From contig CBFFRQ010000085.1 of NCBI GenBank assembly GCA_965644315.1, forward strand, positions 1-56,464: a stretch of 56,464 nucleotides of DNA, read 5' to 3'. Numbering within the stretch: position 1 is the first letter of the stretch; each line of letters begins with the position of its first letter. The stretch comes from Caecitellus pseudoparvulus (lineage: Eukaryota; Protista; Bigyra: Bicosoecida). The notes under the pieces were generated by a model. It made no database searches. It saw only the letters and a list, made by a program, of their open reading frames with translations, and was not told the origin of the DNA. Of this stretch, positions 1 through 45,616 are shown one piece after another. Made by a program: the position numbers and the translations under genes.

Positions 1-3000
1 CTTGCAGACCCTGTCCGTAACTCAATGTTTCCGGCGCTGGTGGTCGAGTACCCCGTGCTGAGGGTGACGGCACCAGATGAGTCTGCAGCCCCAGATGAAA
101 GACTCATCTGTCCCGAGGCCTCCACCGACTTGCCGGTCCAAAGTTTCAGACTGCCGGACAACTTGTGCGCAGACGATGTGTGAACAGTGACGCTACCCGA
201 TGTCTCCTCACCTCTACCGGTGCGAAGGGTCATTTCGCCAGATGATTCAGCCTCTGATGCTCTGGTCTCAATTGAAATGCCGGAATTGCTCCCCCATCCG
301 CTCGATGCGACTGAGATTGCTCCTTCCCTTGACTTGAAAGATCCACCCTCAAGAGCAACCTTGCCTTGCCCTGGTCCAGTAGACTGTGCTCGCAGTCTCA
401 GCGATGACTTAAAACCTGACGCAGACATGTGAACTGCAGCATCATGCTCACTTTCAGAGAATAGCTGAAGGGAGCTGTCATGCGTAGATGCAGAGCTGGA
501 AAGGATCATTGCCGCAGCCTCGGTCTGGCTGGAAGCAGCCAGCTCGAGTCCTGGTGACAGACCTGAAGATGTCCCAAGCAGCTGCACATGGCCCGCACTC
601 TCCGAACCGATCGATATTCTGCCTTGTTTTCCTCTACCTGCTATCCCTGTCACAACGGATACGTTCCCTGAGGCTTCAGAGCCAGACCCTGTTCCGATGA
701 GCACTTGTCCGCTGTCGTTGGAAGCGCCAATTCTGATAAAGCCGCTTTCATTACTTGATCCAGTTGTCAACTTGATGCTGCTGCTAGTTTTATCCCGGTC
801 TGTAGTGCCAAGCGAAAGAAGGCGGGTGTCCTTTCCACCCAAGCGGATCTCTTCACTAGCCAGGTGCAGCAAGCTGTTCTCTCCTTCTGCAACAAAACTT
901 GCTCCGTCCGAAGCTGACAGCACAAGTTCTTCACTACGAGTTTCAAGCAGTCCTCCAAGCTTTGTCGGGGCATAGCCAGTACTGAGTGCTAGATTTCCCC
1001 CCCGTGCTGCTCCTGAACTGGCCTCGATGTTGACTGTCCCACTTCCTCTGTTATTCGTTCCTGCCAGAACGGAAACATTCCCGCCTGCAGAGGAGCTAGA
1101 TCCAGCTTGCAAGAGCACCGCACCAGGGCTGGTCCCAGTCCCTGCCGTGATCCTGACAGTAGCTGGCCCCTCTGGCGAGGCGCCTGCTCCCACGTCGACG
1201 TCTCCAGCACGGCCTGCCGCATCCCCAGTCTGCAACTGAATCGTGCCTGATCTTGATTGGCTGTTATCAGCCCTCAGAACAACATGCCCTGGGCTCTGAT
1301 GGCTCGAAAGTCCTTGGATTCGCACTGCATCGCGCTCATAAGTGCTCGATCCACTCAATTCTACTGAACCCCCGCCCTTTGCTGCGGCAATGATGCTTCC
1401 CCCATGAGCTCCCGTGCCAGCGGTGCTCATGAGAGAAATGTTCCCGCCGCGTTCGTTGGCAGTTCCGGCAAGAATCTGGACATCTCCACTGTCCTTGATC
1501 CCTTGACCAGCACGGATGAAAACCTCTCCGGCAGTTGCTCGTGCGGCTCCGGAACCGACGGTCAGTGCAAAACTGCTCTCCATTGCCGAATCTGTCGCTG
1601 AAAGGGACAGCGGCCCAGACATGTGCCCCTCCCCCGTTGAAAAGCTGATGCTTTTGTTGGCCGACAATGACAAGCGATTGGTGCTACCCTCAACATCACC
1701 AGTGACTTCACCTGCGTGCGTCTGCAGCAGGAGCTGTCCAGTGGACGCACCCTGCCCAGACACAAGTGAGATCAAATTCGAGCTTTGCAAGCGAAGTTCC
1801 CCGCCAGTACTGGAAGAAAAGCTTCCTCCTGCCTGCAATTGAACATCTCCTCCGTCATGGGCACCTCCGCTGGACACAACAACTGAGCCGCTCGACACAC
1901 CAGCGGAGCCGGCTTCAATGCGCACGGAACCAGACTCTTCTTTCGCAGCACCGGATCGAAGCAAGACAGATCCTGAGACAACACCTTCGCCTGATGAAGC
2001 TGAGACTGCTCCGGAGCGTTGGCCAGCAGCCAAGCTGCCGAGCATGACTGATCCGGACGTCTTCTCCGCGCCTCCAGAAGCCACAAGAACACTGGACGTA
2101 TGGCCCTGAGATGAATGTCCGGTGGTGATTCGGAGGTCTCCTCCCTGATTTGCGGAAGATCCAGCCTGGACAATGACACGACCGCCTGACTTCGTGCCAC
2201 CTTGACTTTCCAACAAGAGCTCGCCTCCACGTCCTCCTGCCCCCGCTGCTTCAAGTCGCATTGTACTCCTTCCGCTGCCGGCCGAGTTTGAAGCCAATGT
2301 TAGATTCGTTGCCTTCATGCTCTCTGTGGATATGACCAAAGATCCATTGCTTTTCTGGGACTTAGATGACAACGACACGCTCGCAGACCCGTGCGCACTC
2401 TCGGCCGCCATGCCAAGGCGTGAGTTGCCAGCCGCCGAACTACTCGAAAGAATCAAGCTGGAGTTCTGCTCGCTTGCTGCTGCCAATGATAAAACAGAGT
2501 GGCTTGTCCGGCCTCCCGCTCCAAGCTCAAGGTTGGACCCAGAGACCCGAACTGAAGCAGTATTCGAGTCTCCCACGGTAATTTCACCTTTCGATGCGGT
2601 GTCTGCTGTGCGGAGTGCAACTCTGCCTGTCGCATCTCGACCGCCGATCAACTCAACCTTCCCCCCGTTCAACCCTGCACTGTCACCTTCTGCCGAAAGT
2701 GTCACGTCTCCGCCATTCCTTCCACCACTTCCCGCAGAGATGGCGACTCTGCCTCCTGAGGCCTCACCCGGTCCAGCAAGTACTTGAACACCAGTCCTTC
2801 CTGATCCAGCCCCACTTGCCAGAAGCCTAACTGAGCCACCTTCTGCATCAGACAGGCCTCCTTGAAGTGAAACTGAGGCTGAAGCACCTGAAGTGACTCT
2901 GACATGTCCGCCACTGGTCCCTTGGGAGCTTCCTGCTTCAATCGCGACCATGCCTCCCACCCCCCGGGCTTTCCCGGACTGAATGGACACATTGCCTGCC

Positions 3001-6000
3001 GCCTCAGAGCCGGCTCCTGCTGCGAGCACTACACTTCCTGACGTTTTCGTTGCATGGCCTGAAGCAACCACCACCTGCCCTGAATCTCCTGAGGTTGCTT
3101 TTCCAGAGGCAACGCGAATGCCTCCGGAGGACTGCCTTGCGTCGTCAGTTTCAAGGAGAAGCCCAAAGTTTGACGATGTCGAACCACCTCCTCCCAGAAT
3201 GGACACACTTGCATCACCTGCTTGAGACACTGCTGCAATGCTGACGGATGCCGTGGTTCCGTGGGACGACGAGTCACCCACTGACTTGGCACTCAGCTCC
3301 AGCGCCGGCTCAGGAGTACTGGCGTGTCCACCTGAAATAAGGACCCGCCCGTTTTCTTCCGCATGAACATGAACATCTCCTCCATTTCCTTTGCTTGAAT
3401 CGCCACTAAAGAGCCTGACACTTCCTGCTTGCCCTTCGCTTGAGTCACCTGAGCGGAGCACAATGCTCCCTGAGGAAGCAGCAGCTTGTCCTGACAGTAA
3501 CTGGACAGCTCCACTCACTTGGGCGGCCCCACTCTGTATACTGACACTACCTGAATCCTTGTTTGACGCCCCCGAGCCAAGTACCGCGTCTCCGCTGGGC
3601 CCCTCTGCAGCGTCCCCTGATACGTGCCTGAGGGTTCCACTTGAATCGATGCCGGAACCAGACTGCACTGTTACCGCTCCAGATACAAGGGATTCTCCGC
3701 TTTGAATGCGTACCGAACCTGAAGAAGACAGCAGGGAGCCCCCGGAAGCAAGAGAGACTGGTCCAGACTCGTGCCCAGTTGCGTTGCCCGAGCGCAAAGA
3801 AACAGAACCAGATGCGCCAGACTTTGCCAATCCTGATGCGATAAACATGTTACCACCTGGCGTCAAAGGTGACATCGAAGAGCCGCTAAGCAACGAAAGG
3901 GTCCCACCGTTGCCTGCTGCGCTGCTGCCGCTTCGAATTGATACCAAGCCTGCACTGCCCTGGGAAGAGTCCCCGCTGGACAGGCGGAGCGGCCCGCTTC
4001 GAAGCGTGCTGGGGCCGGTCGCGATCAAAATACCGCCAGATTGCCTGCTCGAGGGAGTGGAAATTACTACTGCCCCAGTCACGTCCTCTCCTGCGCCACT
4101 TCGAACGACAACGCCCCCACCTTCGCCGCCTCGCGCTTGCCCGCCACGCAGCGTAACATTGCCGGCAGGCTGTCCACCCATGTGAGCACCGGCGGTCATT
4201 TCAACACTTCCAGCGACCGATGCACTTGATGAAGCTGCTCCAGCTACAATCTTTATCGCCCCACTTGCTGCTGTGGATGCGGCTCCCGCTCCAGCGAGTA
4301 TTGTAATGTCTCCGGCACTTTGGGCAACTGCATCACCAGTAGACAGAGTAAGGGCACCCGAACTGTCAGCGGGTCCTGTTCGCATGGAAACTGAGCCCGA
4401 TGATTGAGCAGCCTTGCCAGATGACATGCTCAAGCCACCAGAGCGCACAGGGGAGTCAGCAGTGGCAAGGTTGACGGCCCCGGACTTGCCTGACGATGCC
4501 GACCCAGATGCAACTGTCACATTCCCGCCAGTACCGTTCATGGATGCTGCACTCCCAGCACCGACTACCACATTGCCACCTTTCTCCAGGGAGCTTCCAG
4601 CATGGACGGAAATGTGACCGCCTTGTGCCCCCCCGGAATCACCCACTTGAAGAACAATGTCACCAGCCGCGCCCCTTGAACTGCTTCCCGTCTTCACGTG
4701 AACTGAACCTGACGAGTCTGAGCCAATGGCGGTCTCAATGCGCACCTCTCCCGACCGTTGGGCCCCCTTGCCAGAAGCGATGCCAACTGCCCCACCCGAA
4801 CCTGAAATTGATGGACCCCCTGCAATACGAACAGTGCCCCCTTCTGAGCTGTCAGTTGAAGCAGTCCCACCAACGAAGGATACGTTGCCACCTCGCATGC
4901 TCTTTCTGGCGGCAGATGACATAACAGAACCTCCTTGCAGCGTGAGGGACCCCGGCTGGCTGCGTTGGGAGGATCCTGCTGAGATGCGCACGGAGCCTGA
5001 CTCGCCATTCGAAGATGATCCAGTTGCGAAGAACAGGCCTCCGCTGGACGCAGCACTGGAGCGCCCTGAGACCAGTGATATGTCTCCACTGACCCCTGCG
5101 TTCCCCGTCGACACTTGAATCCCTCCACTCTGTCCAGAGCTTGAAACACCGGTTGTCACGCTGATACCGCCTGATCTCAACGAAGCTTCGGCTGTCTCCA
5201 GCCGCATTGCCCCAGATGAAGCTGCACCTCTCCCGGATGAGGCTGATACGTTGCCTCCCACCCCGCCTTGCCCGTGCGCATCTCCACCTTGCAAAAGCAA
5301 GTTCCCAGCGGTTCCTCCCTTCATTGACGTGTCGCCACCAGCGAGTCGAACATACCCTCCTGAGGAAAGCGCAGCACCAGCACGAATGAACACTGAGCCT
5401 CCGCTTTCAGAGCCAGTATCGCCCCCTTTCAAATCAATCTGCCCTGAGCGAGTGGGCGCCCTCCCTGTCGACAAACTGACACTGCCTGAACCCACCGCCG
5501 CTGAGCCTGACCGAATCAAGACAGAGCCACTGACTTTGCTTCCTTGCCCAGAGGCCATTGTTGCGTTTCCACCGCGCTGGCCTTGACCGCTAGCCAGGAA
5601 CACGCTGCCACCTGCCTGAACTGCGTGCCCTGCTTCAAGTCGAAGGCTGCCGCCCTCGCCTCTAACGCTGCCCCCAGCAAACACGCGAACGGAACCCGCC
5701 CCGCCAAATCGGGATGCTCCTGTCTCCATTCGCACTCCACCTGATGCCTCTGATGACGCACCTGTGCTGATGAGCACGTGGCCAGATGATGCCCCTTCAC
5801 TAGATCCGGAGCTGACAGAAACATTCCCTGACAAGCCACGCGAGGAATCTCCCGAAGCAAGCATGGCAGGGCCGGACCGTCCGCCAACACTCACGCCACT
5901 TCTCATGTACAGCGCTCCACCTGCTTCTGCGGCAGAAGTTGACCGACCAGCCATGATTGTCGCCATGCCGCCTTTGCCTCCCGCTGCGAATCTGGAGGAA

Positions 6001-9000
6001 GTACCGGCCCCAGCGCGCAGCAAAACATCTCCTCCACGCTTGCCTGGCGCGGCGGTCTGGCCTGCCAATAGCTCCAAACTGCCACCAGTTGCATCGATTG
6101 AAGAGCCAACTGAGAGCACAAGAGAGCCTGCTTGCCCACCAGCAGTGCTTCCAGAGGTGAGCGAAAGGTGTCCAGCATTCCCTGCGGGTGCATCGCCAGT
6201 TGTGATGGAGATGGTGCCAGAGGAAGCCGCCTCCTCAAGCCCGCCTGCAGTTGCGACGAGCACTGAACCACTTGATGCGCCCGTGCCAGACTCGAGAGAG
6301 AGGTCTGCTCCGCGGCCGGTTACACTTGATCCAGAAAGCAAGGCCACATCTGCTCCAGATGAGTCTGCACTGCTCCCACCTCGAATGGAAATAAGCCCGG
6401 CGCGTCCTTGCTGTGATGCACCAGTCCTCAACTCCACAAATCCAGACTCGCTTCTGGACGAATCGCCGCTTGCAACGGCCACAGTCCCCGACTGCCCAGA
6501 TGCAGAGTCAGCAGAAGCAACAAGCACTGAGCCAGAGTGACCACGAGACGAGGACCCGCCAGAGAGAGAAAGAAGCCCCCCATGACCTGCTTCTGCTACC
6601 CCTCCAGAAAGGAGAACAGTCCCTCCCACCGCACGGCCATCCTCAGACAGAGTTGCACCGCCATGTAACAGTACGTCTCCGCCGTCTCCACCGTTGACAG
6701 AAGACTGTGACATCCCCGCACCACCCCGTACCTCCACTCGGCCTCCAACCGAGGACGCAGAGTCAGAAGTCCCGGCTTGGATGAGAACATCACCGGGAGC
6801 GCCTGAGGCGCTGGAGCCTGCACGCACTTCAACACCCCCAGCAGCTCCTTCAGTGGACATGCCAGACTGAAGAAGCAATGACCCACTCTCTCCACCATTT
6901 GCTTGACCGGACTGGAGGAGGACAGCTCCGCTTGAGCCCGCTGCCGTCGCGCCAGCACTTGCGATCTGCACGGACCCACTCGACGTTGCGGTGCTGCTGC
7001 CACTTGAAACAGACACATCACCACCTTTTCCAACATAGGCCGGACCGCCCCTCAGCAGTAGTTGACCACCTGAACTGAAAGCTCCACCGTGTGCTGCACC
7101 GCCAGCAATGACAACGCCTCCGCCAGACCCTTCGCTAGCTTGAGAAGCTGCGAGAGCATCGCCAGCCACAAGTCGAAGGCTGCCTCCAGAGCCTTGCGCT
7201 GCAGAGGAGCTTCCTGCCTCAATTGTAGTATCAGCTCCGTCGTGAGTCAGAGACACTCCAGGCTGCAAGGTCACCGTGCCAGCCTTGCCTTGAGCGCTAC
7301 CAGTCGACAACAGAACGGCACCCGAAGCCCCGCGCTGGGCCTCCCCGCTCGCTAGAACGAGTGATCCCGACGCAAGTGTGCCCCTGGCAGTCAGTAAGGT
7401 GACCCCTCCACTTGATGAGCTTGAACTTGATCCTGATAACAGAGACACTGCCCCACCCTGATTGGCAAGACTCATGCCACCTTGAAGAGTGGCGTTCCCT
7501 CCAGGAGATCCAAACGCAGAGCCAGCCTCCAAAACAAGTTCTCCTGGAAGTGCATACCCGTGGCCTTCCCCTGCTTTAAGGAGAATGCTACCCGAAGTCG
7601 ATCCAGCTCCAGCAGCACCTCCGGCAAGCGCCTTGATGCTGCCTGCAGCGGCTTGGAGTGAAGAGCCAACTGTACCCGCCTCAATGCGAATGTCACCAGC
7701 CATTGATGATGACGAGCCAGTGGATAGGCGCAGGTGGCCAGATTGACCAAGGTCTGCACTGCCCGTCTGCAAAATTACTGCCCCAGAGCTTGTGGCTGAA
7801 GCACCCGACACGATGGTCACGTCCCCCGATCCGCCAGTCGTGGCATTCGAAGAACCAGCGCTAAAAGCACCAGACACACCCCCTTCTGCTGCCTGGCCGG
7901 TCACAATGCGCACTGCTCCGCCGTGAGATTCCTCAGAAGTGGCGTCTCCACCTTCAATGCTCACACTTCCGCCCTGGACCAGGCCGGCCCCTGCACGAAG
8001 GGACACACTGCCACCAGCCACTGTCCCATCGCCCCCCTGTATGCTGACTTGAGAGCTCTCCTGTGCAGATGCACCGGAGGCAATGTCAACACTGCCTGAT
8101 TGCTTGGCAGCGGGGGCGGATTGGAGCGTCAAGTTCCCTGACACTTGAGCCATGCCGTGACCAGACACGACACTGATCGATCCCCCCTTTCCACTGCTGG
8201 AAGCACCAGCAGCCATGAGCACTGATCCGCCAGTGTTGGCACCATCACCACCCAGCACGTGCACGCCCCCTCCATTGCTCACAGCTCCAGTCTGGAAACC
8301 AGGCTGGCTGTTGCCTGCGGCCAGCGTCACGTCCCCGCCGGAGCCTTGGGAGGCTGACGAGTGCCCTGCCAACATAGAAATGGACCCGCCTCTTGAAGCT
8401 AAAGAGCTTCCTGCAAGAATTTCAACGGATCCTGCCGGTCCACCTTGAGAGTCTCCGGTGCTCAATAGCAAGCTGCCAGAGCTGCCTTGGTCAGCAGACC
8501 CAGTGGCGACGCGAATGGAACCACTGCTCACCCCAGCCCCCACGCCTGCTGCTGAAGCAATGTTCACAGCACCAGAGACGCCAACCATGGCAGATCCAGA
8601 CTCCAGTGAAGCGTTGCCGCCAGTACCATACACTGCAGCTGAGCTACCGGCAAGCAGCTCCAGGGACCCTCCGTGGCTTGAGTTGCTGCCCCCTGCCGCG
8701 ATCGTGACCTGCCCTCCACTGCTCGAGTCCGATGTGCCTCCAACAATGCTCACAGCGCCAGCTGCTGCCCCAGTTGTCGCTACAGTCGACAGCAGCACGC
8801 CTCCACCACCACTTCCAGAGCCTGCAAGAATGCTCATGCTGCCGCCTACAAGGGAGCCGCTGCCACCTTCCAACACAACATGGCCGCCTTTGCTGCCGCC
8901 TATACCTGCTCGGATCTGTACACTGCCAGCCTCCCCATGTGCCGCGCTGCCGGCACCCAGAACGATGTCTCCTCCCCGCTGCGAGGTCGCCTGCCCGGTC

Positions 9001-10020
9001 CAGGCACTGCCGGCATGCACTCGAATGGAGCCAGCAGGCGCATCATCTGCTGATCCAGCACTCAGCACAACGCTGCCGCCGGCGCGTCCACTTGCCTGTG
9101 AACCTGTTGCACGCAGTTCTACGCTGGGGGCCTCCACGGCGAACCCAGCCTGCCCCAGCTCAAGGGCAAACTGGCCTTCCTGCCCCTTGGCGGACAACGC
9201 TCCACCGCCAAACTCAGGGTCGGGCTCAACCAGCAAGTCTCCAACAACCCGGCTCACTGGTGTCAGTGAGGCTGGGCAGGGAGCCTCATACACCGTGCCA
9301 TGGCAGTCAGAGGAAAACGTCTCGGCGACCGATAGGCACACCTGCTTGCTGGCACACCAGGCACATTCCTGGGAGGAAGCACAAGAGTTGCAGTCCAAGA
9401 GACCTCCACAGTTGGGTTCAACTGTGAACAGGCAATGTGGAAGGCATTGGTGTTGAGCGTCTCGCAAGTTGCTGTGCAGAGGGCTTTTGCAAGGTCTGCG
9501 CGCGTGTGGCACAGCCCGAAACGCTCCGCAAGCGCTGCGGAACTGGCGCCGGAGGCAGAGGCAGGGCAGGTCATGTTTGAGGATTCAGCACTGCCGTATG
9601 CAGCCGGCGCAGGCTCCCGTTGCATCCAGCCGACAACGCAAGACGCAGAGGCAGGTGGGCACCCTTACCTGGGCATTGGTCACCACTTTGCAGCCAATCG
9701 GGGCAAATGAGCTCGAGTGGGCCGTCTGCCGTGCCTGGCAGGCAGCTCAGGGTGCTCATGCAAAATCCGCACCCGTCTGTTTCCACACACCGCTGGCACG
9801 GTTCAACTTTCTCCCTGGGCAGGAGAGAGGCATTCCAAGTGAGTACTGGGTACACTGACTACTCTGGTGCGTTCCAGTGCTGAGGACCGGCGCAACGAGG
9901 CACGCACCAGAAGGGGGAAATCTCGTCAGCTACAGTGAACGCATGGCAGCTGCTCGCCTCCGCGTGCTCTGACAGCAAAGCCAGTGCCAAAAGAAGCAAC
10001 ACAGCTGGGAGGGCTGGCAT
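1..10020 (-). CDS. Giant secreted protein (>3200 aa, 3' end outside window): signal peptide, two PSI-like Cys-rich modules, then a very long array of ~14-16 aa Gly/Ser-rich repeats (GG-[SD]-V-x-[IL]-x-[SAT]-G)
   Basis: Hand-spliced exons 10020-9908, 9814-9669 and 9421-<1, with GT-AG introns and consistent phases. They give MPALPAVLLLLALALLSEHAEA-SSCHAF..WEKVEPCQRCVETDGCGFCMSTLSCLPG..CPVEPNCGGLLDCNSCASSQECAWCASKQVC..GGSVVLSAG.. The + strand shadow ORFs from 187 to 8458 all lie in one frame, and the ORF track lists no terminated ORF in the coding frame. Both fit one stop-free exon running off the edge. Confidence 0.88.
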
Positions 10021-10300: not shown

Positions 10301-11141
10301 TCAGTAGAAGAAGCCCAGGATCTTTCCGCCAGTGTGCTTGCTGTGTGCCTCTGCGTGGTCCATGATGCCCTGAGATGTGGTCAGCACGACATGGCCGAAC
10401 TGGGCAGAGCAGGGGGAGAGAGCAGTGCAGATACTGTCAACCGGCAAGACGTGCAATCGCGACGCCCCCACCGGAACGGAGCAGCGCATGGGCGGTGCAC
10501 GATGCACAACGTACCTGGCGGGATGGCAGCAGGTTCGCCACAACCTTCTCAGAGTCAGATGCCTTGACATCGAAGCGAGGAGACACGACACCGCACTTGT
10601 TGATGCGGCCGATGAGGTTGACGACAACCTTGCCGTTGCGGTGGTCATCCACGATGGTGATGTCACCAATGTAGCCGTGCTTCTGCATGACCCGCAAGAA
10701 CTTGATGATGACCTTGGAAGAGGGGCGCAGCATGCACTGGCGCTTGCCGCGCTTCTCGGCGTTGTACAGGGACTTGAGGGCGTCAGCCAGCACATTCATG
10801 CGCACCTGCGAAGGAGACAAGGCACCACAGGTAAGGGCGGCATATCACATGCATGGTGAAGAGGGTATACTGCTGGGTTGCTGCAGCGCATGCCAGCAGG
10901 TGGCAAGCAGACACCCCACACTGCAGCAGAGGCGGAGGCGAAAAGCGGAAATTGGACCAGCCCAGGCAACCCGACTCGGCACCAGCAACGTTCGAAGGCG
11001 CGTTCATGCAGTAAGCCTGGGCCCACGTGAAAGCTGACAACGCGCTCTTGGCCAGCCAGTGTTTCTAGCCTTCAGTCAGGGTAGCCACCACAGGTACATC
11101 TCGCTGCCGGGGTAAGACTCATAACACACGCGACGTACCAT
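10301..11141 (-). CDS. RPS15A: 40S ribosomal protein S15a (uS8), 130 aa, 3 exons
   Basis: Exons 11141-11139 (ATG only), 10805-10515 and 10399-10301 give [87 protein letters not shown], exactly the canonical length. Confidence 0.97.
10944..10954 (+). promoter_or_regulatory. Recurrent motif WGCGGAAATTG, copy 1 (RPS15A intron 1)
   Basis: AGCGGAAATTG seen directly; one of six copies. Confidence 0.5.
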
Positions 11142-18531: not shown

Positions 18532-20453
18532 TCACCCCCGTGGCACGACACTTGCGCGGTACACGCCCAAAACACCCATCTCCTCCTCTAGCACCTCCAC
18601 CAGCGCACGCATGGGAGACGTCTCAGTGAGCTGATGTGCTCGAGCCAGACCGGGGGGGATCACTGCTTCTGTTTGGCGGCCCGTCTTGAACACGACTTTG
18701 CACAAAATGGAGCCGTCCCCTCCGAACTGGTCGGCACCTTCCAGGCGCCAGGCATTGCGCACCATTTGCTCAAAGTACTCGTCAGTGTCCACACTCGCCG
18801 AGACGTCTCGGTAGTACCGCTGAAACTCTTCGAGCGACACGACGCCGTCCTGGTCAATGGTGTCCCACTGGGACAAGAAGTCCGACAGGACCTCCTCCTG
18901 CGTCATCTTGCCTTGCAAGACCTCTTGGTGGTGCGACGCATCATACAGCTTCTCCAAATCTGCAAGGGTCACCTTGCCGTCGCCAGTGACATCAAGCTTT
19001 TCGAAGGCTTCTTGGACGACAGCGAGACGAGCCGGTGACATGTCCCCCCGCAGGGCCACCAAAAACTCGTCGAAGGAAATGACGCCGTCCCCGTTGGTGT
19101 CGAAGGCATCCAGCAGCATCGTGAACTCCTGGTCTGAAATGCGCACCCCGTAGTCGTACAAGCCCCACTTGAAGTCCTCCCTGTCCAGGCCACCATCCCC
19201 GCCGTCGTCGATGATGCGGAACATCCTGCCCAGGCCACGAATGCCGTGCACTCCGTTGCGCTCCAGCAGGACAGCCTTCACCTTGTCCATGATCATGGCA
19301 GGCGTGAGCTCCACAAAGTGCCGGTCATCAACCGCCGCCTCGGGGGTGCTCGCCGTGACAACAACCCACCGGTTCTGCGACTGAGCCGGGCGGCCCTTCG
19401 CACTGGAAGTGATGGTGTTGGGCACGTACTTAAAGGCGTGGGCCACCAGCTCGTTGCCAAAGTCAGTGGGCATTTGCAGGTCCAGCGAGGCGGCCAGCGG
19501 CCGATTCGTGGCGCGGTGCATGACTTGGACAGCGGAGCCGACAGGGACTGGCGTCCCTTCCACCGCCAGCAAGTCTCCGTCGGCAGGCACGATGCTCCAC
19601 AGGGAGGCACTGTCTGGGACGAGGGACATGCACACCTCGTTGCGGTTGCCCGAGCCTGAGCCGGTGATGTTGTCCGGCCGCTCAGACACGAGGTAGTACG
19701 GCGGCGCCACCACAGACGTCGTCGGGTCAGCCCGCAGGGAGGGGTTGGATGCAAGGGAAAACACGTCCCCGAAGCAGACGATGTCCCCAGCCGCCTTTTC
19801 TGCCCCTGGAGGAGGGGCAGCGAAGCGGCTGCCTCCTCCTCCACCTGCAGCTGCCCCTGCGGGGGTTGCGGTGTCCCCCATCGCTGCACGGACGACTGCT
19901 CGAGCAGCCTTTGGTGTGACCACGAAGACGTTTCTGGCCACGGGCTCTGACGCTGAGATACAAGTGGCGGCGGTCGTGCCCTTGGTGTGGTCAACCGTTT
20001 GCCACAAGTTGCAGGCCAGGAAGTGAGTGTGCACCTCCGAATGGAAGTCCTCTTCTTCAGTCTTAAGCTGAATGCTATCGCCGTAGCGCAAGAATCCATC
20101 GGGGGCATACGAGTGAGGCACCTGCGAAGCCAGCGCCACAAAGGTGCACGATCTTGCATCGAGCACGCATGCTTGCCCTGCTGTGAAGCCCCACAGGCAG
20201 ACGACCATCACAGAGAGCAGTGGGACGGCGGCAGTAGAAGTGCAGCAGAGGAGCAGGTACTTACCGTCTGCATCATGATGCTGCCCTGCCTTTGCTGCCG
20301 CAAGGAGAGGAGTTGCCCCCTGCTCCGCTTCAGCTCATAGTCCTTGGCTGCGAGCTCTGCTTGGGTATGGTCTTCAGAGTAGTTGCCGAGGAGAGCATGT
20401 GAATACCTTGGACCCCCCGTGAGCTGCTGCTTGGTGAAGCCAGTCCCTGCCAT
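18532..20453 (-). CDS. CFAP161: CFAP161-like axonemal microtubule inner protein fused to a calcyphosin-like EF-hand domain, ~592 aa
   Basis: Exons 20453-20265 and 20121-18532. The N-terminal part (LGNYSED, KDYELKRSRGQL, DGFLRYGD, PVARNVFVV, EGTPVPVG, HRATNRPL, TDFGNELVAH, NRWVVVT) parallels CFAP161/C15orf26. The C-terminal part (GIRGLGRMFRIIDDGGDG, FDTNGDGVISFDEFL, AFEKLDVTGDG, FQRYYRDVSASVDTDEYFEQMVRNAW) is calcyphosin-like. Confidence 0.8.
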
Positions 20454-20955: not shown

Positions 20956-23900
20956 ATGCGATTGAGTGTTTGGAGCGCTACTTGCTTGCTACTTCCAGCG
21001 CTGTGTGGGCTGTGTGGTGCCCTCGAACGACAAGGTAAGCGGCGACAGCTTTGCTGAAACGCGGCCGAGACGCAAGCCGGAGCCAAGCGACCACCTTCAC
21101 AGAAGCTCAGTGGGTAGACGCCGGGAAAATTACGTTCTCGGACGTCTCCAGTACAAGAGCACGCCTGCAATTCCATGTGAATGGCGGCAGCAGGTGCGCC
21201 ACGCCTTGCTCCCGCGCAGTGCTGTGACGCCGCACACACAGGCAGACTTTGGCGCACCCCTTCTTGCAGTACTGTGAGGGACTTTTCTCTTGAACTGCGG
21301 CTGTCTAGTGAACGGCAGTGGAAGCAAGCCACTTTGCTTCCAGAAACGGGATCTACCCTGAGCGCAGTTGAAGTGCAGGTGGTCCGTACTAGAGCCCCGG
21401 TCGGAGGAGCGATCAGGGCAGGGACATTTCGATTGCAGAGCTTGCAAGCCCCGTCTGAAAACAGAGGTCGCGAGCCCGGTCGCGTGTCCCAGCCGCTTTA
21501 CTGGAATGCTACTGCGTCAGAGATGCGGCGAGCGGTTGAAGGTTTGCTCGGTGGAGCCTCCGCGCACGTCTCGCGCACACAGGGGGACGCCCCGGGGGAG
21601 TATGAGTGGAAGGTAATCTTCCCCCCACTTTCAGCCATCCCACATGCGCCTCTTTTAGGGCTAGGCAGAGTCCCTGAGCTGATGCCTGTAGACGTGGCTG
21701 GCTTCCCTGCAGGCTCCAAGCCCCACGCCGTGTCCGTCCTGACGGTCAGGGACTCGACCACTACGAATCCCGCCTGCCACCAATCCTGTTCAGCAATCGT
21801 AACTGGGTTAAAGGCCAGCTCCCTGTACTTTGCGAGGGTGATATTTCGCCTGGGCAGCGGCTCAGCAAGTCATCAGGTGTACGCTGCAGAGCCTCTGCGA
21901 ACCCTGGCCGTTGGGTCACCAGGACGCCCTGCTGCCCCGCAAGTGATGCACCGTTCAATGGCGAGCACACGAATAAAAGTCTCTCTTCCAGATCCTTTGA
22001 TTGTAAAACAGGGTGTGTCTGGGGTGGTGGTGGAGGTGTGTGAGGCAGGTGCTGCAGGGGTCTGCGAGCTGCACAGGCAAGAATTGGATGCGACGGGGGA
22101 GGCTGACCAAGCGAAGCGTGCGGGACAAGTGCTGAGCCTCCCTGGGCTCCCTATGAGCACCTCAATCTCGGTAAGGCAGCGCTGGTTCTCGGGCAGCAGT
22201 GTTTCACCGTGGTCGCCTTGGACGCAGTCGCTGCCAACTCCCTCCAGCCACCACCCGCCAGCCATACGGGGGCCTGTCACTGTTTGGCTTGACCCGCCCG
22301 GAACAGGACCAAGTCTTGTTCAACTGCATGTGCAGATGGCTGGAGAAATCGACGTTTCACGTGCCGCGATTCGGGTGCAGGCCAGATACTCAGCTCCTGA
22401 GAGCCCCTTGGGTCCGTGGGAAGACCTGAAGGTCCTCCGCACTGCGCCTGGATTGCCACGAGCCCCACTGGGGCCGACACACCAGACTATGACAGTGAAT
22501 GCTACTGCTTCGTGGCTGTCATCTCCGTTTGTTGCGGCGTTCCGGGTGGGCTTTGACGATCGAATCGGGGGCGTTGACTGGTCCGAACCTGCGACGTCAA
22601 TCTCCACTGAAGTTGGTGGCGGCGGTTCGACAATGGTGCGAGAAGGTGCCCTATTTCCCTCGGAGGGGCCCCCATTCTCGGCACAAGACCTTTCTGGGGA
22701 GCAAATTGCTCATACCTCCGCAACTCATGGTGGCTGGGCGGGTGCCCTGGGAAGCCCGGCTCCTGGCGTGATTGACTCGCAGCTCTCGAAAACAGTGGGC
22801 CTAGGAGGGGAGCATGGGCAGCGAGGGCATGATGGGGCAGTCGTTGTGCAGTGGAAATCAAGTCGAGTTGCCACTATTGTCCAGCGTGTGCTGTCGATTG
22901 CAGACCCACCGCCTTCATCCCAACGCCGTTCTTCACTCGACGTGCCCGCCTCAGTGTCAGACGACGTTCAGGATGGGAGTGCAGCTGTGACGCACGTAAC
23001 AATCCACGCCTGGGGTGCAGGTGGAGGAAGCTCTCTGGCGTTTGGGCACGGGGGGGCAGGTGGCTACGTGAACGGTACATTCACGGTCAGTCATGGTCAA
23101 GTACTGCACGCTGTCATCGGCAGGGGTGGCTCTGCAGGGTCTCCAATGCGCTCCGGCAGCAGCAGCAGCAGCAGCAGCAGTAGGGGTGATGAGAAGCTGT
23201 ATGGTTCCGGTCAAGGCTTCGCAGGAGCCGGGTGGGGCGGCGAAGCCACTTGGGTTTGGCTCTCTCAGGCAGGACAAGGCCCGACACTGCTGCTCATTGC
23301 AGGAGGGGGTGGAGGAGGCGGAATGGCCAGCGCCTGTTGTGCGAATGGCGGAAACGCAGGAAGTAGGCTGCGCAGCGCGGGAGAGGATGGCATGTCACCC
23401 CATGGCCATGCATACTCGCAGCCGGCGCACTTAATTGGTGCGTCAAACCTGAACACGACGCCGGCTACTTCCTCTACTCTTCATTCGTGGATATCTACAA
23501 CTCCTGCATCCACGCCAGGATCAGGTGGGTCTGGACAAGGAGGCAGTGCAGGCCGGACAGGCACACAAGATGGTGCTGCTCAGGGGACTTGGCGGGCAGC
23601 GACCGCCGGGGGGTGGGGGCAAGGAGGGCATGGGGGTGCAGGCCGAGTAGGTGGTGGCGGCGGCGGAGCAGGCCTTGTAGGTGGTGGCGGAGGAGGGGGT
23701 GGCCTGCAGGGAAGCGGTGGCGGCGGTGGGTCTTCATTTGTTGCAGTGAACAGGGACAGGGCTGAGCTGGCAGGAAGCGCCCCCCGCCTGTCCGTGCATG
23801 CAGTGGCGAATTCGCCAAGCAGTGCACTGGTCTCATGGAGCCATGGGCCTGGAGCAGGAGACGGTGCAACTCAGCTTCATCAGTTCGTCGTGGAGGGAGC

Positions 23901-26358
23901 ACTGGGGTTCACATCTGAGGAGTGGCTTGAGCTGTGCGTTGTGCGTTTTGGAAGCCACCACTGCGTGTGGCACGGCCTCGCTCCTGGGCAGCAGGCAAGG
24001 GTGCGAGTTCGCGCAGTGGGGCACGGCGAAAAGCCCAGCAGCGAGTGGGCATATGCACTCATCTCCATGCCCTCTGTAAGGCGCCAGCCATCTCGTTGGC
24101 AGCCCATGTTCCCTTTGCTGGAGGTGTCAGAGCGAGGCGGGGCGGTGGGGGCTTCAGTCGCTCCGCCCCCAAGCTCTGGAGCCAGCATCACTGAAGTATG
24201 TGACGGCTTCATCATGTTTGGGGGACTCTCTGCTGGAGAGTCCTGCGATCGCACCCTGTCAGCCGCCTGTAATCTGGGTTCTCAAGTTTCCAATGATCTT
24301 TGGAAGCTGGACCCTGTGTTGAACACCTGGCAGGCACTGGCTGTAGTGGGGGGCATCAAGCCTTCAGCGAGGCACAGGCATGCAGCATCAAATCTGCAAG
24401 GTCAGCTGTGCGTCTTTGGCGGGGCCGCGACGCCGTTTTCAGCTTTGCACGGCGGGGGCGTGCCATCTTTTCTTTCTGACACGTGGTGCCTGGACCAGGG
24501 GCACACCCAGCAGCGGCAAGGGACAGCAGTCGCCTTCTCTCCAACCCCAGGCATTGGAGCCCAACAGATGTCTAGTGTGATGGAGATAGAAGGCCAAGGC
24601 CCTGCCGCAGTGGTCGAAGTGGAAGAAGCCCTTGCGCGGGCTGCAAATAGCTCATTGTCACATGCCGAGCAAGGTCTGGCCTCTGCCGCACTCCTCCGTG
24701 GGCTAGACTTGGAGTGCACAGCAGACATTATGGTGGTCGTGCAGCTCCAGGTGTCTTGCCCGGTGACGCTTAGCATCTCGTTGTTTGGCCCGTCTCGCCG
24801 GCCTCATTCTAGTGCTGTGCTTGGGCCTCGTAAGCACCCACAACCATCTGCAAGGGGAATCCAACTGTTGCGTGGCAGCTTCCCCGCCTGTGAAACAGGG
24901 GCGACCAAGTATCGCAATGTGACCATCTCTTTCTCTGACGATGCGACGGACCTAGCAAGCATCCCCCAGAGCGCCAGCGGCCAGCAGTGCCAGCATGTCA
25001 ATGCGTCAGGTGGTGTCCCGGCTTGTCCTGCAGCAGACGTGCACCAGCACATGTCCGTACTGAAACCCGTAGAGCCACTGTCGTCGCTGCTTGGGGCCCC
25101 ATCCGCGTCAAATTGGACGCTTCAGGTGACATCCGCTAACCTCTCCACGATCAGGGTAACATCGTGGACGCTGCAGCTCCGAACTCGTCCCTGCACAAGG
25201 CAGGCGCGCTGGTTCAGGGTACACACGCCTATGACGCCACCAGCTCGAATGGATGCGACAGCGGTTGTGGTGCACGGGGAGTGGTTCGTGCATGGTGGCT
25301 CGGCAGGGACCCCGCTGCAGGACATGTGGAGGTACTCACCGCAGCTCCTTGATTGGGTGCAGCTGCGCCAAGCCAGCCCTCCTCACAGACTTCGCTTTCC
25401 CTCTCCCAACATGCGGTCCACAGCACTAGGACGGGCTGCGGTTTTGTCTCCCTGGGGAGTGCTGACTTTCGGGGGGCGTCCAGGGGCTGCACGGGGGCAC
25501 TCCGCGAATCAGGTCTGGCAGTACTGCCCTCGGCACAAGGTATGGAGCGTGGCAAGTAGCACGGCAAGCGAAACGGGCGAGACCCTTACCGAGACAGGCA
25601 CCGGTCCTCACCAACGCACTATTGGGGCGGACATGGAGCCCACTTCAACACTCCTTCCTCAGCACGCACGCAGCAGCGCATCCAGGACTGCCGAGTATCC
25701 GCAACCCGACGTGCAGAGAGCACCAATCGGGCGGGCCTCACAGGGTGAAGCACCAGTTTTTGCCAGGCCAGCTCGACGCGCCTTCGCAAGCCTGGCGCTG
25801 GTGGGAGTATCGGAGACACCCCCGAGGTTTAAGTTCAAGCGGTCCCCTGCTTTGTTGGTAGCTGGAGGCTTGGGTGAAGGCGGGCTCATGTCAGATTTGT
25901 GGACATTTGACCTTGCTGGGGTCGCTGTGCACACCATGCAAGGTCATGCTGAGCAAGGGCGCTTGTGGCAAGCTGCCCCAGGCGACACAGTAGAGCAACG
26001 CCCTGAGCTGCTCACATTGCACATAAGCGGTGCACCTTATCTCGGGACCAGGAGCTCTCCAGGCGATGCAGGGTGTGAGCAGGGCGTACGCAGGGGCTGG
26101 TCTGCGTTGCAAGGGGAAGAATTCGTGCACCTTCGGCATTGGTGGCAGCGCCAGTGCTCGTGGCGACTCACCGATAATGTCACATCCCCCGCCACATCTC
26201 TAGGTTGGGAATCTCAACAATCAGGCAGCGTCAGGGAGCTTGGGCCGTGTTTTTCCACCGCGGCAGGCGAGGAGGCAAGTGAGAGCACGTGCACCTTGGA
26301 TGACCTGCTGCTGGCCGCCTTGTGCGAAGGGAGGTTCCAGTCTATTGGAGCGCTCTAG
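20956..26358 (+). CDS. Large secreted mosaic protein (~1750 aa): FN3 domains, ALK/LTK-type glycine-rich domain, Kelch repeats, proprotein-convertase P-like domain
   Basis: Exons 20956-21034, 21103-21193 and 21270-26358. Signal MRLSVWSATCLLLPALCGLCGA; FN3-like VTGLKASSLYFARV and WHGLAPGQQARVRVRAV; Gly-rich IHAWGAGGG..GGAGGYVNGTFTV..LLLIAGGGGGGG; Kelch FIMFGG..NDLWKLD..PSARHRHAA..LCVFGG; P-like LKPVEPLSSLLGAPSASNWTLQV. Confidence 0.72.
23158..23180 (+). repeat. (AGC)n microsatellite encoding poly-Ser
   Basis: Run agcagcagcagc... seen directly, in frame as SSSSSSSS. Confidence 0.8.
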
Positions 26359-27547: not shown

Positions 27548-27906
27548 GGCCGCCGCTGGTGGTACGCCATGCGCCGTCCTGGCTGGCATGGCATTGGGTG
27601 GGAGTGTGTGGACCAGCGTTGGAGGGGGGGGGGTGGCTCAGTCCGCGCGTTTCGGCTCAGCCAGCCGCCTCCCACACCCAAACTTCCCGCACACAACAAC
27701 CACAAATGCACTTGAAGTATCGATGAGGGCAGCTGCATTGTCCAATCCCTCTTTTGCACGGGAGGGCGCCTGCTGCCTGGAAGCGTGCGGTCGCGTGCGA
27801 CGCGCGTGCACTGTCCTGCACCACTGGTCGCTTGGCAGCTGTCTGCTGGCGGCACAGAGTGGCAGGGCGAGCAGGGCAGGGCACGTGACTAGTACAGGGC
27901 ACAGGA

Positions 27907-30771
27907 ATGGCAGGGCAGCCATGGTACTACTACGCCCCCTTCCACGACCTGGTGGTGGGGCACCCGGCGCCAGCCAGCATCATCCCGCAGCACTTCCTGT
28001 TTGGGGAAGGCGGCGCGACAGCCAAGGCTGCCCGGGGTGTGTGTGGCCCCCTCGCCTCCATGCTCATCCAGTCCCTCGCCAGGGCAGTGCAGCGGGATGA
28101 CCTGGTGCTGCTGCAGCGCCTGCTGCTGCTGGCCAGCAAGGTGGACGGCAGCAGCAACTGGTTCCTGAACACAGTCCTGAACGGCGTGGACGCGGTGGGG
28201 TGCACCCTGCTGCACCGGGCCGTGACGCTGGCCACCACCAGCAACATGGTCCTGCGGGGGCTGGAGGGCGCCACGGAGCCTTCGGGGGAGCCCTACATGG
28301 ACGTCCTGGCGCTGCTGGTGCAGGCGGGCGCGGACGTGAACGGGCGGGACATCCGGGGCGCCACGCCCTTGCACTACGCGGCGGTGAGTGGGAACCTGCC
28401 CCTGACGCAGATCCTCCTGCGCAGCGGCGCAGACCCCACCCTGCTCATGGACGACGGGACGTCCCCTCTGCTGGCGGCGCTGCAGGCAGGGGCGGAGGAC
28501 GTCGCGCGGGTGTTGCTGGGGGAGACACGCAAGGCTCTGCGGCAGGCGGGGGCAGGGGCGGGGGAGGCGGGCGGGGGTGCCGGGCGAGCGCAGACGCAGC
28601 CCCGCACTGGCGCCACGGCGCGGCTGTTCATGCAGCCGCCGCCGCCGCCCGGCGCCTTGGGCTCCCTCCTCTTCCACGCCGTGGCGGGGGGCGACCTGGT
28701 CCTGTTCGTGTACTTGACTGCCCTCACCTCCGTGCCCACAGCCACCACGCGCCCTCACCCTGCGTGGTGGTTCGCCGCCGCGGCAGGGCACGGCGCCTTG
28801 ACAGGGGTGCTGCTGGCGGCCACCCACGCCACCTCCCGCATCGCCCCGCCCGCCATGCTGTCTGGCGGCGGCCTGGAGGCGGGGGCCGCCGAGGAGCACC
28901 GCCGGGTTGCCGCCACTGCCCGGCGGCCAGGGGGCGCGTCGCCAGGCCCCGGCGGCGAGGCGCCCTGGGGCCTGGACGACAGCGTCCTCGAAGCGGCCAA
29001 GCACTGCATGGATGAAGTGGTGCTGCCGCTGCTGGCATCCCCCGCGCAGTTGGTGGGGGGGGGCGACGCCGCGGCGGACGCCAAGGCAGCGCCCGCCTCC
29101 CCCTGCCGCGCAGTGGCCACGTCCACCACCCTGTTCCTGCTGCCGCCGGAGGGGCGGCACGGCGGCGATGCGGCACTGGAGATCGGCATGGACCTCATCC
29201 TGCGCCTGGCGCTGGGCGGCGGCGCCAGCAAGCCTCGCAAGGCGGCAGCAGGGCGGGACCCCCTCCCAGTGCAGGTGCGTGACGCGGGGCTGGCGCCGTG
29301 GGATGCCCTGGACAGCGGCCGCCTGGCGCCGCTGATGGCGTGGCAGGCCAGCACGCGGGTGCTGGCGGCGGCGCCACACCCACCGGGGGCACGCCCCCTG
29401 CCCCGCACAGCCCTTGCCTTTGCGCTGGGCGGCATGCTGGGCGCCACGCGGCGGCGGGGGCACGGCAAGCGCAGTGCGTGGGAAGAGACGGGTGGCGCCC
29501 CCCCCGTGGCCGGCCTGGGCAGTGCGCTGCACCTGCCCTCCTCGGGGTGGGCAGGGGGCGACAGCGTGCCCCCCCCCACCGCCACGGTGCGCCTGCCAGC
29601 GCTGCTGGACAAGCCGCCCAGCGGCAAGGGCGGGGCAGGGGGCACCCTCACCCTGCACGTGAGTGTGGGCGACCCCGTGACGCTGGTCTTCCCAGACACC
29701 CCCCTGGCTGCCGCCTGGGCTGCCTTCCTCACCGCCGCCGCAGTGCAGCGCAAGGAGGCGGCGCACGTGCGGGCGGCGGTGGCACGGGGGGGGCGCTGGC
29801 TGCATGGCGCCACACACACCCTGCGCAGCCATGTGGCACAGCAGCGGCGGGAGCGCCGGCGGTGGCTGCGCGGCCTGGCGGGGGCTGCTGCAGGGGCGGC
29901 CTGTGCGGCGCCGCCCACTGCCGGGGCCGTGTCTTCAGACGCACCTGCTGCCGGGCGACGCCCGTCTGCTGGCGGGCAGGCTGGAGGGGCGCAGTTGGCG
30001 GGCATGTTTGCGATTGAGGAAGGCAGCAGCAGTGAGGGGGAGGAGGGGGGGCCGCTGCAGGTGCTTGTGCCGCGGGAGGGCGCGCCGCCGAGTGGCAGGG
30101 CGGGCCGCCGGCGCCAGCCACCGCCCCCCCCTCCCGTCAAGAAAACCCCCCCTGCACCCCCCCCTGGGCGCAGTGCCCGGGACTCCATGCTGCCCGTGCG
30201 CCAGGCGGCCACTGCGCCGCCAGACCTGCCAGACCTGCCAGACCTGCCAGCTGGCACAGGGGCTGTCAGCGCGCCAGGAGCGGGCAAGGCTGCCGCCCTG
30301 CCGTCGCTGCCGTCGCTGCCGTCGCTGCCCATGCCGCCTGGGGACGGGCGGGGCGGCCAGCTCCCTGGCGGTGGGGGGTTTGCGGCGCGGGGCGGCATGG
30401 CCACGCGCCGAGGTAGCTACGTGCCTGCAGGGTTCGGCGCGCAGGCGGCGATGCGGCGGCCGCGGGGGCGGAAGGAGGAGACGAAGGCGGCGCCGGCCCC
30501 TGCCCCCCCTGCTGTGACCCTGGCCACCCTGCGGCGACTGAGTGTCGTGTCTGCCACCAACACCGCCGCAGCAGTGGCGGTGCAAGCGGCCTTCCGAGGG
30601 TGGTGGTGTCGGCGCCTGCTGGCCAAGGGCCAGTGGACCCGAGTGCGGGACGAGGACGGCGACGTGTATTGGTGGAGCGGCGCGGGGGAGGTGTCGTCCT
30701 GGTGGCCGCCCCTCTCCGACCCTGGCTTCGACTACGCCGCTCTCGCGTGGAAGGCCCGCCTGCCCGCCTGA
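27907..30771 (+). CDS. Ankyrin-repeat protein with possible degenerate PH-like domain, Pro-rich region, IQ motif and C-terminal WW domain (954 aa)
   Basis: Ankyrin GADVNGRDIRGATPLHYAAVSGNLPLTQILLRSGADP; IQ AAAVAVQAAFRGWWCRRLL; WW QWTRVRDEDGDVYWW..SSWWPP. Confidence 0.75.
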   Translation: MAGQPWYYYAPFHDLVVGHPAPASIIPQHFLFGEGGATAKAARGVCGPLASMLIQSLARAVQRDDLVLLQRLLLLASKVDGSSNWFLNTVLNGVDAVGCTLLHRAVTLATTSNMVLRGLEGATEPSGEPYMDVLALLVQAGADVNGRDIRGATPLHYAAVSGNLPLTQILLRSGADPTLLMDDGTSPLLAALQAGAEDVARVLLGETRKALRQAGAGAGEAGGGAGRAQTQPRTGATARLFMQPPPPPGALGSLLFHAVAGGDLVLFVYLTALTSVPTATTRPHPAWWFAAAAGHGALTGVLLAATHATSRIAPPAMLSGGGLEAGAAEEHRRVAATARRPGGASPGPGGEAPWGLDDSVLEAAKHCMDEVVLPLLASPAQLVGGGDAAADAKAAPASPCRAVATSTTLFLLPPEGRHGGDAALEIGMDLILRLALGGGASKPRKAAAGRDPLPVQVRDAGLAPWDALDSGRLAPLMAWQASTRVLAAAPHPPGARPLPRTALAFALGGMLGATRRRGHGKRSAWEETGGAPPVAGLGSALHLPSSGWAGGDSVPPPTATVRLPALLDKPPSGKGGAGGTLTLHVSVGDPVTLVFPDTPLAAAWAAFLTAAAVQRKEAAHVRAAVARGGRWLHGATHTLRSHVAQQRRERRRWLRGLAGAAAGAACAAPPTAGAVSSDAPAAGRRPSAGGQAGGAQLAGMFAIEEGSSSEGEEGGPLQVLVPREGAPPSGRAGRRRQPPPPPPVKKTPPAPPPGRSARDSMLPVRQAATAPPDLPDLPDLPAGTGAVSAPGAGKAAALPSLPSLPSLPMPPGDGRGGQLPGGGGFAARGGMATRRGSYVPAGFGAQAAMRRPRGRKEETKAAPAPAPPAVTLATLRRLSVVSATNTAAAVAVQAAFRGWWCRRLLAKGQWTRVRDEDGDVYWWSGAGEVSSWWPPLSDPGFDYAALAWKARLPA
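30217..30327 (+). repeat. Two short in-frame 9-bp tandem repeats, (ccagacctg)x3 and (ccgtcgctg)x3
   Basis: They encode PDLPDLPDLP and LPSLPSLPSLP; seen directly. Confidence 0.7.
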
Positions 30772-30784
30772 CGCTGCGGCGCCG

Positions 30785-31460
30785 TCAGGCCAGGGCGCTG
30801 CTGAAGGTCAGCAGTGCCGCCACCAGGGTGAACCTGCGCAGGGGGTCAGCCAGGGACAGCGGCAGCGCCGCCCGCAGGCCGAACTCCCGCACTGCGAAGA
30901 TGGCCACGCCGAGGGCGAGGAGGGCAGGCGGCCCGGTGAGCCCCTCTGCCGCCACGGCGGTGCACACGCCGCCTGCCAGGGCCAGGAATGCAGGCACCTG
31001 CACCAGCTTCGTGTACGTCTCGTTGCCGGTGAAGAAGGCCATGAGGGCAGCGGTGGCGGCGGCAAGGAGCACGTCACCCTCCCGTGCCAGCAGCGGCGCT
31101 GCCCAGGCACCCGCGGCGGTCTTGCTCAGCACTGCCAGGCACATGACGACGATGGGCAGGGCGTTGGCCAGCTGCCGGAAGAAGAAGTGCAAGTCCGTCA
31201 GCATGCCCCAGGGGCCGTACCGGGCGATGCCCACGGCGCTGGCGGCGCCGACAATGCACCGGGCTGTGAAGAGTTGCTGGCCCCGGCCAGAGGACAGGTC
31301 TGTCACGCTGGCAAGGTACACAGCACACAGCAACACGGCTGCCTCCCCGATGGCAAGCCACATGGGGGTGTTGCTGCTGGCGGCAGTGGTCTGCATGGGT
31401 GGGCGGGGTGTGTGGCAACGGCAGCCTGCCTGAAATCCCGCTGCGGCTCACCTTTGCCAT
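30785..31460 (-). CDS. Small polytopic membrane protein (~204 aa, ~6-7 TM), function unknown
   Basis: Probable exons 31460-31452 (MAK) and 31390-30785 with a 61-nt GT-AG intron. Hydrophobic helices throughout and GC3-rich codons. Confidence 0.65.
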
Positions 31461-31846
31461 GCTCCTGAACACCGGCGGGGTTTCGCACAACAACAGCAGC
31501 CCAAGGCTGACGAGAGGAGCAGGGGTTTGGTGTTGGGGGGCGGGCGGGGAAGTTCGGTGCCTCGACGTCGCCTCGCAGGTGGGTTTAGCCTGCGCGCAGC
31601 CGGTGCTGGAGCGCAGGTGGTGCACGGGTGAGGGGGGGTGCCATTCGGCCCTGCAGTCTCGCCCCCACCCCCAAAACACATGCAGCACACACCCCGCCAG
31701 ATGAACAGAGCTGACAGGATTCCCCAGTTCCCCTGACCGCCCCCCACCACTGCCAAGGCAGTGCCAGCGGCTCCCAGACGCTACAGTCTTCTGCTGCCAG
31801 GTGCAGTGCACTTGGTCAGCCACGCCATCAGGTGTCGAACCGAGCC

Positions 31847-32877: not shown

Positions 32878-32922
32878 GGGGCGGCGCCCCGCCCCCAGCG
32901 ACGGCGGCAGTGGTGGCGCGCC

Positions 32923-44900: not shown

Positions 44901-45616
44901 TCGGCATCCTTGCTTTCAGAGGGTTGGATTGCCTTGGTTGACGGGGTATCGGCATCTGCTGCATCTGTGCGTGGTCGTCGCAGCGGCCTCCGCGGCCCAC
45001 TCTGCCCACCGCCAGCCGCAGGCATAGGCGCTTGCGACCCAGCGCCAGCCGCGGCAGACGTGCCTGGCTGCGCGGCCTTATGCGACGAAGCGGGCACCTG
45101 GGCTGGCTGTGGTCGGCGCTGCACTTCTCTGGGGGCACTCTTGCCCTCAGAAGCAGCCGGCACTTCCCGGCTAGGCGCTGCTGCTGCCTCTTGCTGCGAC
45201 ATGACTGCCATGCGCAAGTCCGAGATGGCATGCATGACTTCGTCAATGCGGTCCTCGGAAATGATGTGGGAGCACTTGGAGACGATCTGATTAGCCAACT
45301 TCTCCACCTTGGAATTCGGCCCCAGCGTTTTCAGTCGGATCCTGCGAGGCAACCCGGTGCGGCCGTTGGGAGCTCCCCACGCAGATGGCCAAGGTGGCAG
45401 CAGCTCACCGTTTCTGAGTCGGTTTTTCTTTCCTGGACATCTCCTCGCCGAATTCATCATAGGATACCTTCACTGAGGTGTAACCCAACAGCACAGACGG
45501 GTCCGTCGTGTCGACTGCGGGGCGGCGGGAGCCCGCGTTTCACGTTGGCAAGCAGTGAAACGCTGGCGTGCACACCCACTCGACACGGGCCCGGGCATGA
45601 TGTGGGTCTTGTCCAT
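41987..45616 (-). CDS. KIFAP3: Kinesin-associated protein 3 (kinesin-II / IFT accessory subunit), ~1165 aa
   Basis: Exons 45616-45580, 45514-45409 and 45341-41987: ..KRIRLKTL.., EDYLEGIYE, LGALSRTLREDFKK, FYAMSHFSQLH, KRQEKLL..YLLLNLAED, FLRKLS, RRFMLHNKEW, all typical KAP3 motifs. Confidence 0.9.

Follow-up and report, generated by a model that had tools for sequence, protein, structure and literature searches.

The head of a giant secreted repeat protein, probably the precursor of a self-cleaving triple β-helix fibre

Introduction

What kind of protein begins with a signal peptide and a pair of cysteine modules, continues as a glycine/serine-rich repeat for some three thousand residues, and is still open where its contig ends? 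The question is posed by the minus strand at the left end of the DNA analysed here (C85:1-56464; ‘the window’, meaning the whole stretch of 56,464 nucleotides), which comes from a 30.6 Mb, 215-contig eukaryotic assembly. The answer we propose is that the 3,226 residues encoded in the window are probably the N-terminal part of a secreted precursor of ~30,000 residues, and that this precursor makes an extracellular, self-cleaving triple β-helix fibre driven by ICA domains (Peptidase S74).

The closest known system is TLP-12. This eukaryotic triple β-helix glycofibril has been solved, and its candidate genes of ~20,000 aa with an ICA occur in Amoebophrya and other alveolates (e.g. A0A8J1ZHD7, 19,853 aa) (10.1101/2025.09.30.679562). 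ICA domains are known to trimerise, to fold the triple β-helix upstream of them and to cut the chain before the catalytic Ser (PMC3742443, PMC8326128).

Results

The minus-strand frame 9584..3 runs for 3,194 codons without a stop and leaves the contig end; given the local base composition, an open run of this length is expected by chance at ~1e-52. A sequence-only reading of the window had proposed a giant reading frame here, missed by the list of open reading frames, and the frame is indeed present: it escaped the list because the tool omits frames that run off an end. No in-frame stop was found on the minus strand from 9419 to 1, and the frame stays open to the contig end. The gene consists of three exons, and the part of the protein inside the window, 3,226 aa, agrees with the same reading’s claim of more than 3,200 residues and one long repeat exon. 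Exon 1 (9908..10020, minus strand, as are all features of this gene) encodes the start codon, the first Cys of the mature N-terminus and, between them, a signal peptide (residues 1-22) that is hydrophobic (hydropathy peak 2.95), ends in A-E-A and occupies the same place in homologues, so that the ‘clean’ signal peptide of the earlier reading holds up.

Intron 1 (9815..9907; 93 nt, GT-AG, phase 2) is supported by its phase, by an in-frame stop inside it and by the junction codon, which encodes a Trp conserved among homologues. Exon 2 (9669..9814) encodes PSI domain 1 and aligns over its full length to nine homologues; it is followed by intron 2 (9422..9668; 247 nt, GT-AG, phase 1) and by exon 3, which starts with PSI domain 2 (9270..9421). 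Homology searches were run exon by exon and not on the spliced sequence; exons 2 and 3, aligned apart, nevertheless land 1 residue apart in 8 of the 9 homologues, which supports intron 2 independently of RNA. Judged by their sequence, both introns are GT-AG introns with phases that match across the exon joins, and at this level of evidence the gene is confirmed as real and as the head of a giant secreted protein. Upstream, window 10301-10795 (minus strand) holds what we take to be a uS8/RPS15A-like ribosomal protein gene, the end of which lies ~280 bases before the start codon of the giant gene.

Both Cys modules match Pfam PSI (PF01437) weakly, with 15.2 and 15.5 bits against a cut-off of 23.1 (E 0.02-0.03; 0.028 for the first and 0.023 for the second). 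The second module is modelled at pLDDT >90, and its model resembles plexin and integrin PSI domains (Z 5.0-5.5, rmsd 2.0), the plexin match (plexin A4, Z 5.5) extending over 47 residues; its Cys/Trp pattern and predicted fold indicate a divergent PSI domain. The two PSI-like modules noticed earlier are thus borne out, by below-cut-off Pfam matches for both and a confident PSI fold for the second. Between the PSI pair and the repeats lies a conserved neck (9120..9269), defined in 38 sequences by short β strands and an invariant Gly and Pro, which in its fold weakly resembles the stalks of phage spikes and endosialidase (Z 2.7-3.1). Exons 2-3 have no EGF-family match (E 0.1), neither the head nor the repeats have a sequence match in the PDB, a PHROG search returned nothing for the window part of the protein, and the head is absent from the viral contigs searched. 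A DUF2917 match in the window fell below its cut-off and was disregarded.

The rest of the frame (1..9179) is a body of ~206 Gly/Ser-rich β units, open at the contig end, that we delimited by unit splitting, motif counts and autocorrelation. With 21% Gly, 20% Ser and 13% Ala, the body falls into 206 units, mostly of 13-17 aa, with the autocorrelation maximum at 14-15; the ~200 imperfect units of ~14-16 aa described from the sequence were therefore a close estimate. Each unit has a Gly-Gly/Ser turn, two alternating aliphatic residues, a small residue and a Gly. Across the 206 units, Gly stands at 82% and 74% of its two positions and aliphatic residues at ~90% of the two alternating ones, and the strand motif occurs 139 times as compared to 15.5 ± 3.9 in shuffled sequences. 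No internal DNA similarity was detected within the window repeats, nor does this part of the repeats contain a membrane helix or an S74 domain. The view that the array is old survives for the window part but not further down the giant genes, where there are recent 5.3-5.9 kb and 369/459 bp arrays at ~99% identity.

By eye, we also spotted Gly-poor, Ser/Ala/Leu-rich blocks that break the repeats (window 3300-3150, 2540-2250, 930-770 and 560-390, minus strand), and a similar Gly-poor block before an S74 domain on contig C214; these blocks are possibly a second stalk type or a hinge. The monomer model gives the repeats no intra-chain sheet, at a repeat pLDDT of 50-70. A model without intra-chain strands fits one chain of an intertwined trimer. 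Shape matches of the repeats are weak (VgrG-type spikes, TM 0.38; pyocin and endosialidase stalks) and consistent with a triple β-helix.

A search of the same genome revealed related giant frames on contigs C20 and C214. One of them, paralogue B, is complete at C20:276,950-185,339 (~30,500 aa in seven overlapping frames) and comprises a signal peptide, a PSI pair, repeats, a small Cys-bearing domain and a Ser/Thr/Pro tail that contains no membrane helix. Its frame is broken at six points; the break that was examined comes down to one base in a run of G, likely a sequencing error. A GC skew of -0.2 to -0.39 (plus strand) spans the whole giant gene at C20:185-277 kb, and strong skew of this kind offers a quick way to spot such giant genes in assemblies. 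C214 carries a ~76.2 kb minus-strand repeat frame that is headless and open at both contig ends. Finally, a 369/459-bp array ends within the last 4.1 kb of C20 (316-320 kb), which also hold a second tail; this tail is colinear with the paralogue B tail at 42-50% identity.

The 369/459-bp (123/153-aa) array is found at C214:1-34000, C20:189400-230300 and C20:320167-320533. The lower 34 kb of C214 (1-34000) are 99% identical to the C20 array, and the upper 42 kb have no DNA match in the C20 gene. Near-identical arrays below upstream parts that do not match at the DNA level point to a recent conversion, or to an assembly join through the array, and the lengths of both genes are for this reason approximate. 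As for the likeness of the arrays itself, it may reflect concerted evolution of tandem genes or a chimeric assembly.

How far, then, does the window gene (A) extend? The own-genome search returned only two heads; there are four S74 domains in two bodies, C214 is open at both ends, and C20 has a second tail. Counting heads, ICA pairs and tails in this way, we infer that gene A most likely runs from C85 through C214 to the right end of C20, encoding at least 29,984 aa, and that it most likely stands in tandem with paralogue B, ~40 kb upstream and on the same strand. C85 and C214 have no sequence overlap. The segments of the joined A measure 11,927+, 1,959 and 16,097+ residues, as compared to 10,844, 1,757 and 17,936 residues in paralogue B. 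The extent seen in the window thus needs correction: the whole protein is probably ten times longer (~30,000 residues).

Two Peptidase S74 domains (PF13884; 52-64 bits, above the cut-off) are present in each body, that of A on C214 and that of B on C20. The S74 region of C214 has the MYRF ICA structure 7DC3 as its best solved match (E 7.5e-13) and also matches phage tail-fibre families; the predicted fold of the ICA region is too poor to use (pLDDT 38). The catalytic Ser-Lys dyad is kept in three out of the three own-genome copies read (four copies in total); five orthologous loci keep it in their first ICA, and it is lost in some distal copies. In those of L034 (15011-15100) and L039 (12158-13350) Ala or Asp replaces the catalytic Ser; these copies are otherwise well kept and might serve folding only. 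Six loci have a head and an ICA on a single contig (C20, L034, L038 from Phytophthora boehmeriae, L039, L043 and L044), and outside the own genome the first ICA follows after ~2,000-3,000 residues. In both the joined A and paralogue B the ICAs are internal, with 16,000-18,000 residues downstream of the last one.

The family was gathered with a profile of PSI 2 and the neck, word searches having given just 1-2 matches. This profile retrieves 211 clusters (50% identity), 145 of them at E 1e-10, and Gly/Ser repeats follow the head in 18 of the 22 matches long enough to judge. The members assigned to a species, Aphanomyces astaci RLO13579.1, Chrysophaeum taylorii KAJ8603997.1 and Phytophthora boehmeriae KAG7388534.1, are truncated hypothetical models, all from stramenopiles, so that the design is seen in water moulds and golden-brown algae. 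A head tree built in quick mode had low support and did not place the host. Family length varies ~sixfold, from ~5,300 aa in L034, which is nearly complete and has three ICAs, to ~30,000 in the window gene; nothing in the own genome matches the C-terminal domain of L034. Repeat look-alikes in the Atlas include one oomycete-led and one chlorophyte-led cluster, so that the family may not be confined to stramenopiles. PPTG_10509, a cell-body-enriched PSI protein of 206 aa with two membrane helices, is, judged by its description, an unlikely orthologue. A literature search that covered few subscription papers found no description of a PSI-PSI-neck family, which appears to be conserved and undescribed.

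Among the other genes of the window are two flagellar ones, encoding the kinesin-associated protein KAP3 (41987-45460, minus strand) and an EF-hand protein with a CFAP161-like domain (18532-20211, minus strand), which argue that the host is flagellated. The plus strand has three long single frames: RCC1 repeats with TIG domains (46387-54462; 2,691 aa), an EF-hand/DUSP/UCH deubiquitinase (34923-41915; 2,330 aa) and an fn3 and Kelch protein (21181-26358; 1,725 aa). GC content rises from ~60% to 75-77% over window 27900-33000, around an ankyrin-repeat ORF (27907-30771), and a comparable GC-rich island lies at C20:275-290 kb.

Discussion

S74/ICA domains that keep their dyad, set within the repeat bodies, point to a self-cleaving triple β-helix fibre with a total length of perhaps ~1-2 μm. 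Of the two shapes that the sequence-only reading had offered, a long β-solenoid or a triple β-helix rod, the ICA domains in the repeat bodies of the family lend strong, if indirect, support to the second; that reading needs the correction that the chain is probably cut into pieces. On our model, three chains would be joined in the secretory pathway by their ICA domains, which would prompt the repeats upstream of them to fold into a triple β-helix and would then cut the chain before their own catalytic Ser. Gene A would in this manner yield an N-terminal fibre that is capped by PSI domains and has no fewer than 11,900 residues per chain, followed by ICA-headed fibres, one of ~1,960 residues and one of no fewer than 16,100; ICA cutting of paralogue B would release pieces of 10,844, 1,757 and 17,936 residues. 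Our guess is that the small terminal domain folds the part after the last ICA. The Ser/Thr-rich exterior of the fibre is probably glycosylated. A rise of 4.8 Å per unit corresponds to that of one β strand. For TLP-12, the rise is 9.6 Å per repeat (10.1101/2025.09.30.679562), and at 4.8-9.6 Å per unit the predicted length is 0.1-0.2 μm for the window part and 1-2 μm for the whole.

Could the repeats instead form a single-chain β-solenoid, in which the S74 domains merely trimerise or cut locally? Thousands of repeat residues lie beyond the last ICA, out of reach of any ICA that could initiate their folding, and the distal ICA copies of L034 and L039 have lost the catalytic Ser, as this alternative would have it. 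We nonetheless consider it quite unlikely: one hydrophobic strand per 14-15 residues would close a single-chain core only with difficulty, the monomer model shows no stacked sheet, and every characterised ICA acts on a trimer (PMC3742443, PMC8326128). The joining of the contigs invites a different objection, namely that the window gene is a separate, shorter and ICA-less paralogue and C214 part of another copy of the C20 gene, either allelic or misassembled. The missing overlap between C85 and C214 and the 99% identity of the lower 34 kb of C214 to the C20 array are in its favour, but it leaves the upper 42 kb, which have no DNA match in the C20 gene, to be explained; furthermore, heads, ICA pairs and tails number two each in the genome, and the segment lengths of the joined A mirror those of paralogue B, which makes this objection very unlikely to be right. 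Least credible of all is that the gene is decayed or encodes a disordered, mucin-like tether of Gly and Ser. A Gly and Ser content of 41%, the low model confidence for the repeats and frame breaks in several environmental orthologues could be cited for it; the strict periodicity of the aliphatic pairs (139 against 15.5 by chance), the 3,194 open codons, the conservation of the head in 145 clusters and the retention of the catalytic dyads speak against it.

A self-cleaving triple β-helix fibre would work like TLP-12 and the phage tailspikes, and the window family is a member of neither group. With TLP-12 it has in common a giant protist protein, short Gly/Ser repeats and an ICA; the triple β-helix fibril is solved for TLP-12 and inferred for the window family. 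TLP-12 has a strict 12-residue repeat (Gly1, Ser2, Ser5) and one C-terminal ICA, whereas the window family, the named members of which are stramenopiles, has a period of 14-15, internal ICAs in twos or threes and a conserved PSI-PSI head; the window, the C20 array and L034 contain 0 copies of the tandem 12-residue repeat (Gly1, Ser2, Ser5). In phage tailspikes and tail fibres (K1F endosialidase, 3GW6) an S74/ICA domain with a Ser-Lys dyad likewise stands directly after a β-rich stalk, but there the ICA is terminal and discarded, while in the window family it is internal with thousands more repeats after it, and the window gene differs further from those of phages in being nuclear and in having introns and a signal peptide. 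MYRF and MrfA (7DC3) also have an internal eukaryotic ICA with the same dyad, cut before the Ser. The Mas1-3, Ocm and Sig proteins are similarly secreted, Cys-rich and from flagellated stramenopiles; they have EGF-like domains and form the shaft, as compared to the PSI domains, β repeats and ICAs of the window family.

Secretion, fibre shape and the lack of an anchor in the paralogue B tail argue for an extracellular structural fibril. As to where it sits, we give about an even chance to some other surface or secreted fibril and hold a flagellar-hair location to be a tentative possibility; the odds of a general surface or secreted glycofibril are no lower than those of a flagellar-hair filament, and an extrusome thread is possible. 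One specific version, that the fibres are the fine terminal filaments or the length-setting core of tripartite tubular flagellar hairs, with internal cutting giving several filament lengths, is rather doubtful. The three species-assigned members all come from stramenopiles with hairy flagellated stages, as the life cycles of Aphanomyces, Chrysophaeum and Phytophthora include, the window carries the KAP3 and CFAP161-like genes, and the predicted fibre size fits the dimensions of the hairs: flagellar hairs measure 0.3-1.5 μm, and non-tubular ones are 0.5-1.8 μm long and ~10 nm thick or thinner (10.64898/2026.09.11.750887). The known Mas proteins are placed in the hair shaft (10.64898/2026.09.11.750887). 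Set against this, the window family has no EGF-like Mas module, its length varies ~sixfold, and a table of Phytophthora zoospore membrane proteins lists no S74 protein, a weak point since that table is membrane-filtered. Broader still, and in our estimate unlikely, is a stramenopile-wide gene that encodes the fine filaments or the length ruler of tubular hairs as one polyprotein, up to 30,000 residues long, that cleaves itself, the length of each filament being set by phage-type chaperones.

With the PSI-PSI-neck head as a simple marker, the family can be defined and linked to a way of folding and cutting that is already known, and it supplies sequence candidates for unassigned environmental glycofibrils. 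Through internal, repeated ICAs, what is a terminal chaperone in phages would become a means of cutting a single titin-sized secreted chain into several fibres whose lengths are set. As Phytophthora and other stramenopiles that can be cultured have members of the family, knockout, antibody and cryo-EM tests are feasible, and such tests could show what the fine filaments of stramenopile flagellar hairs consist of.
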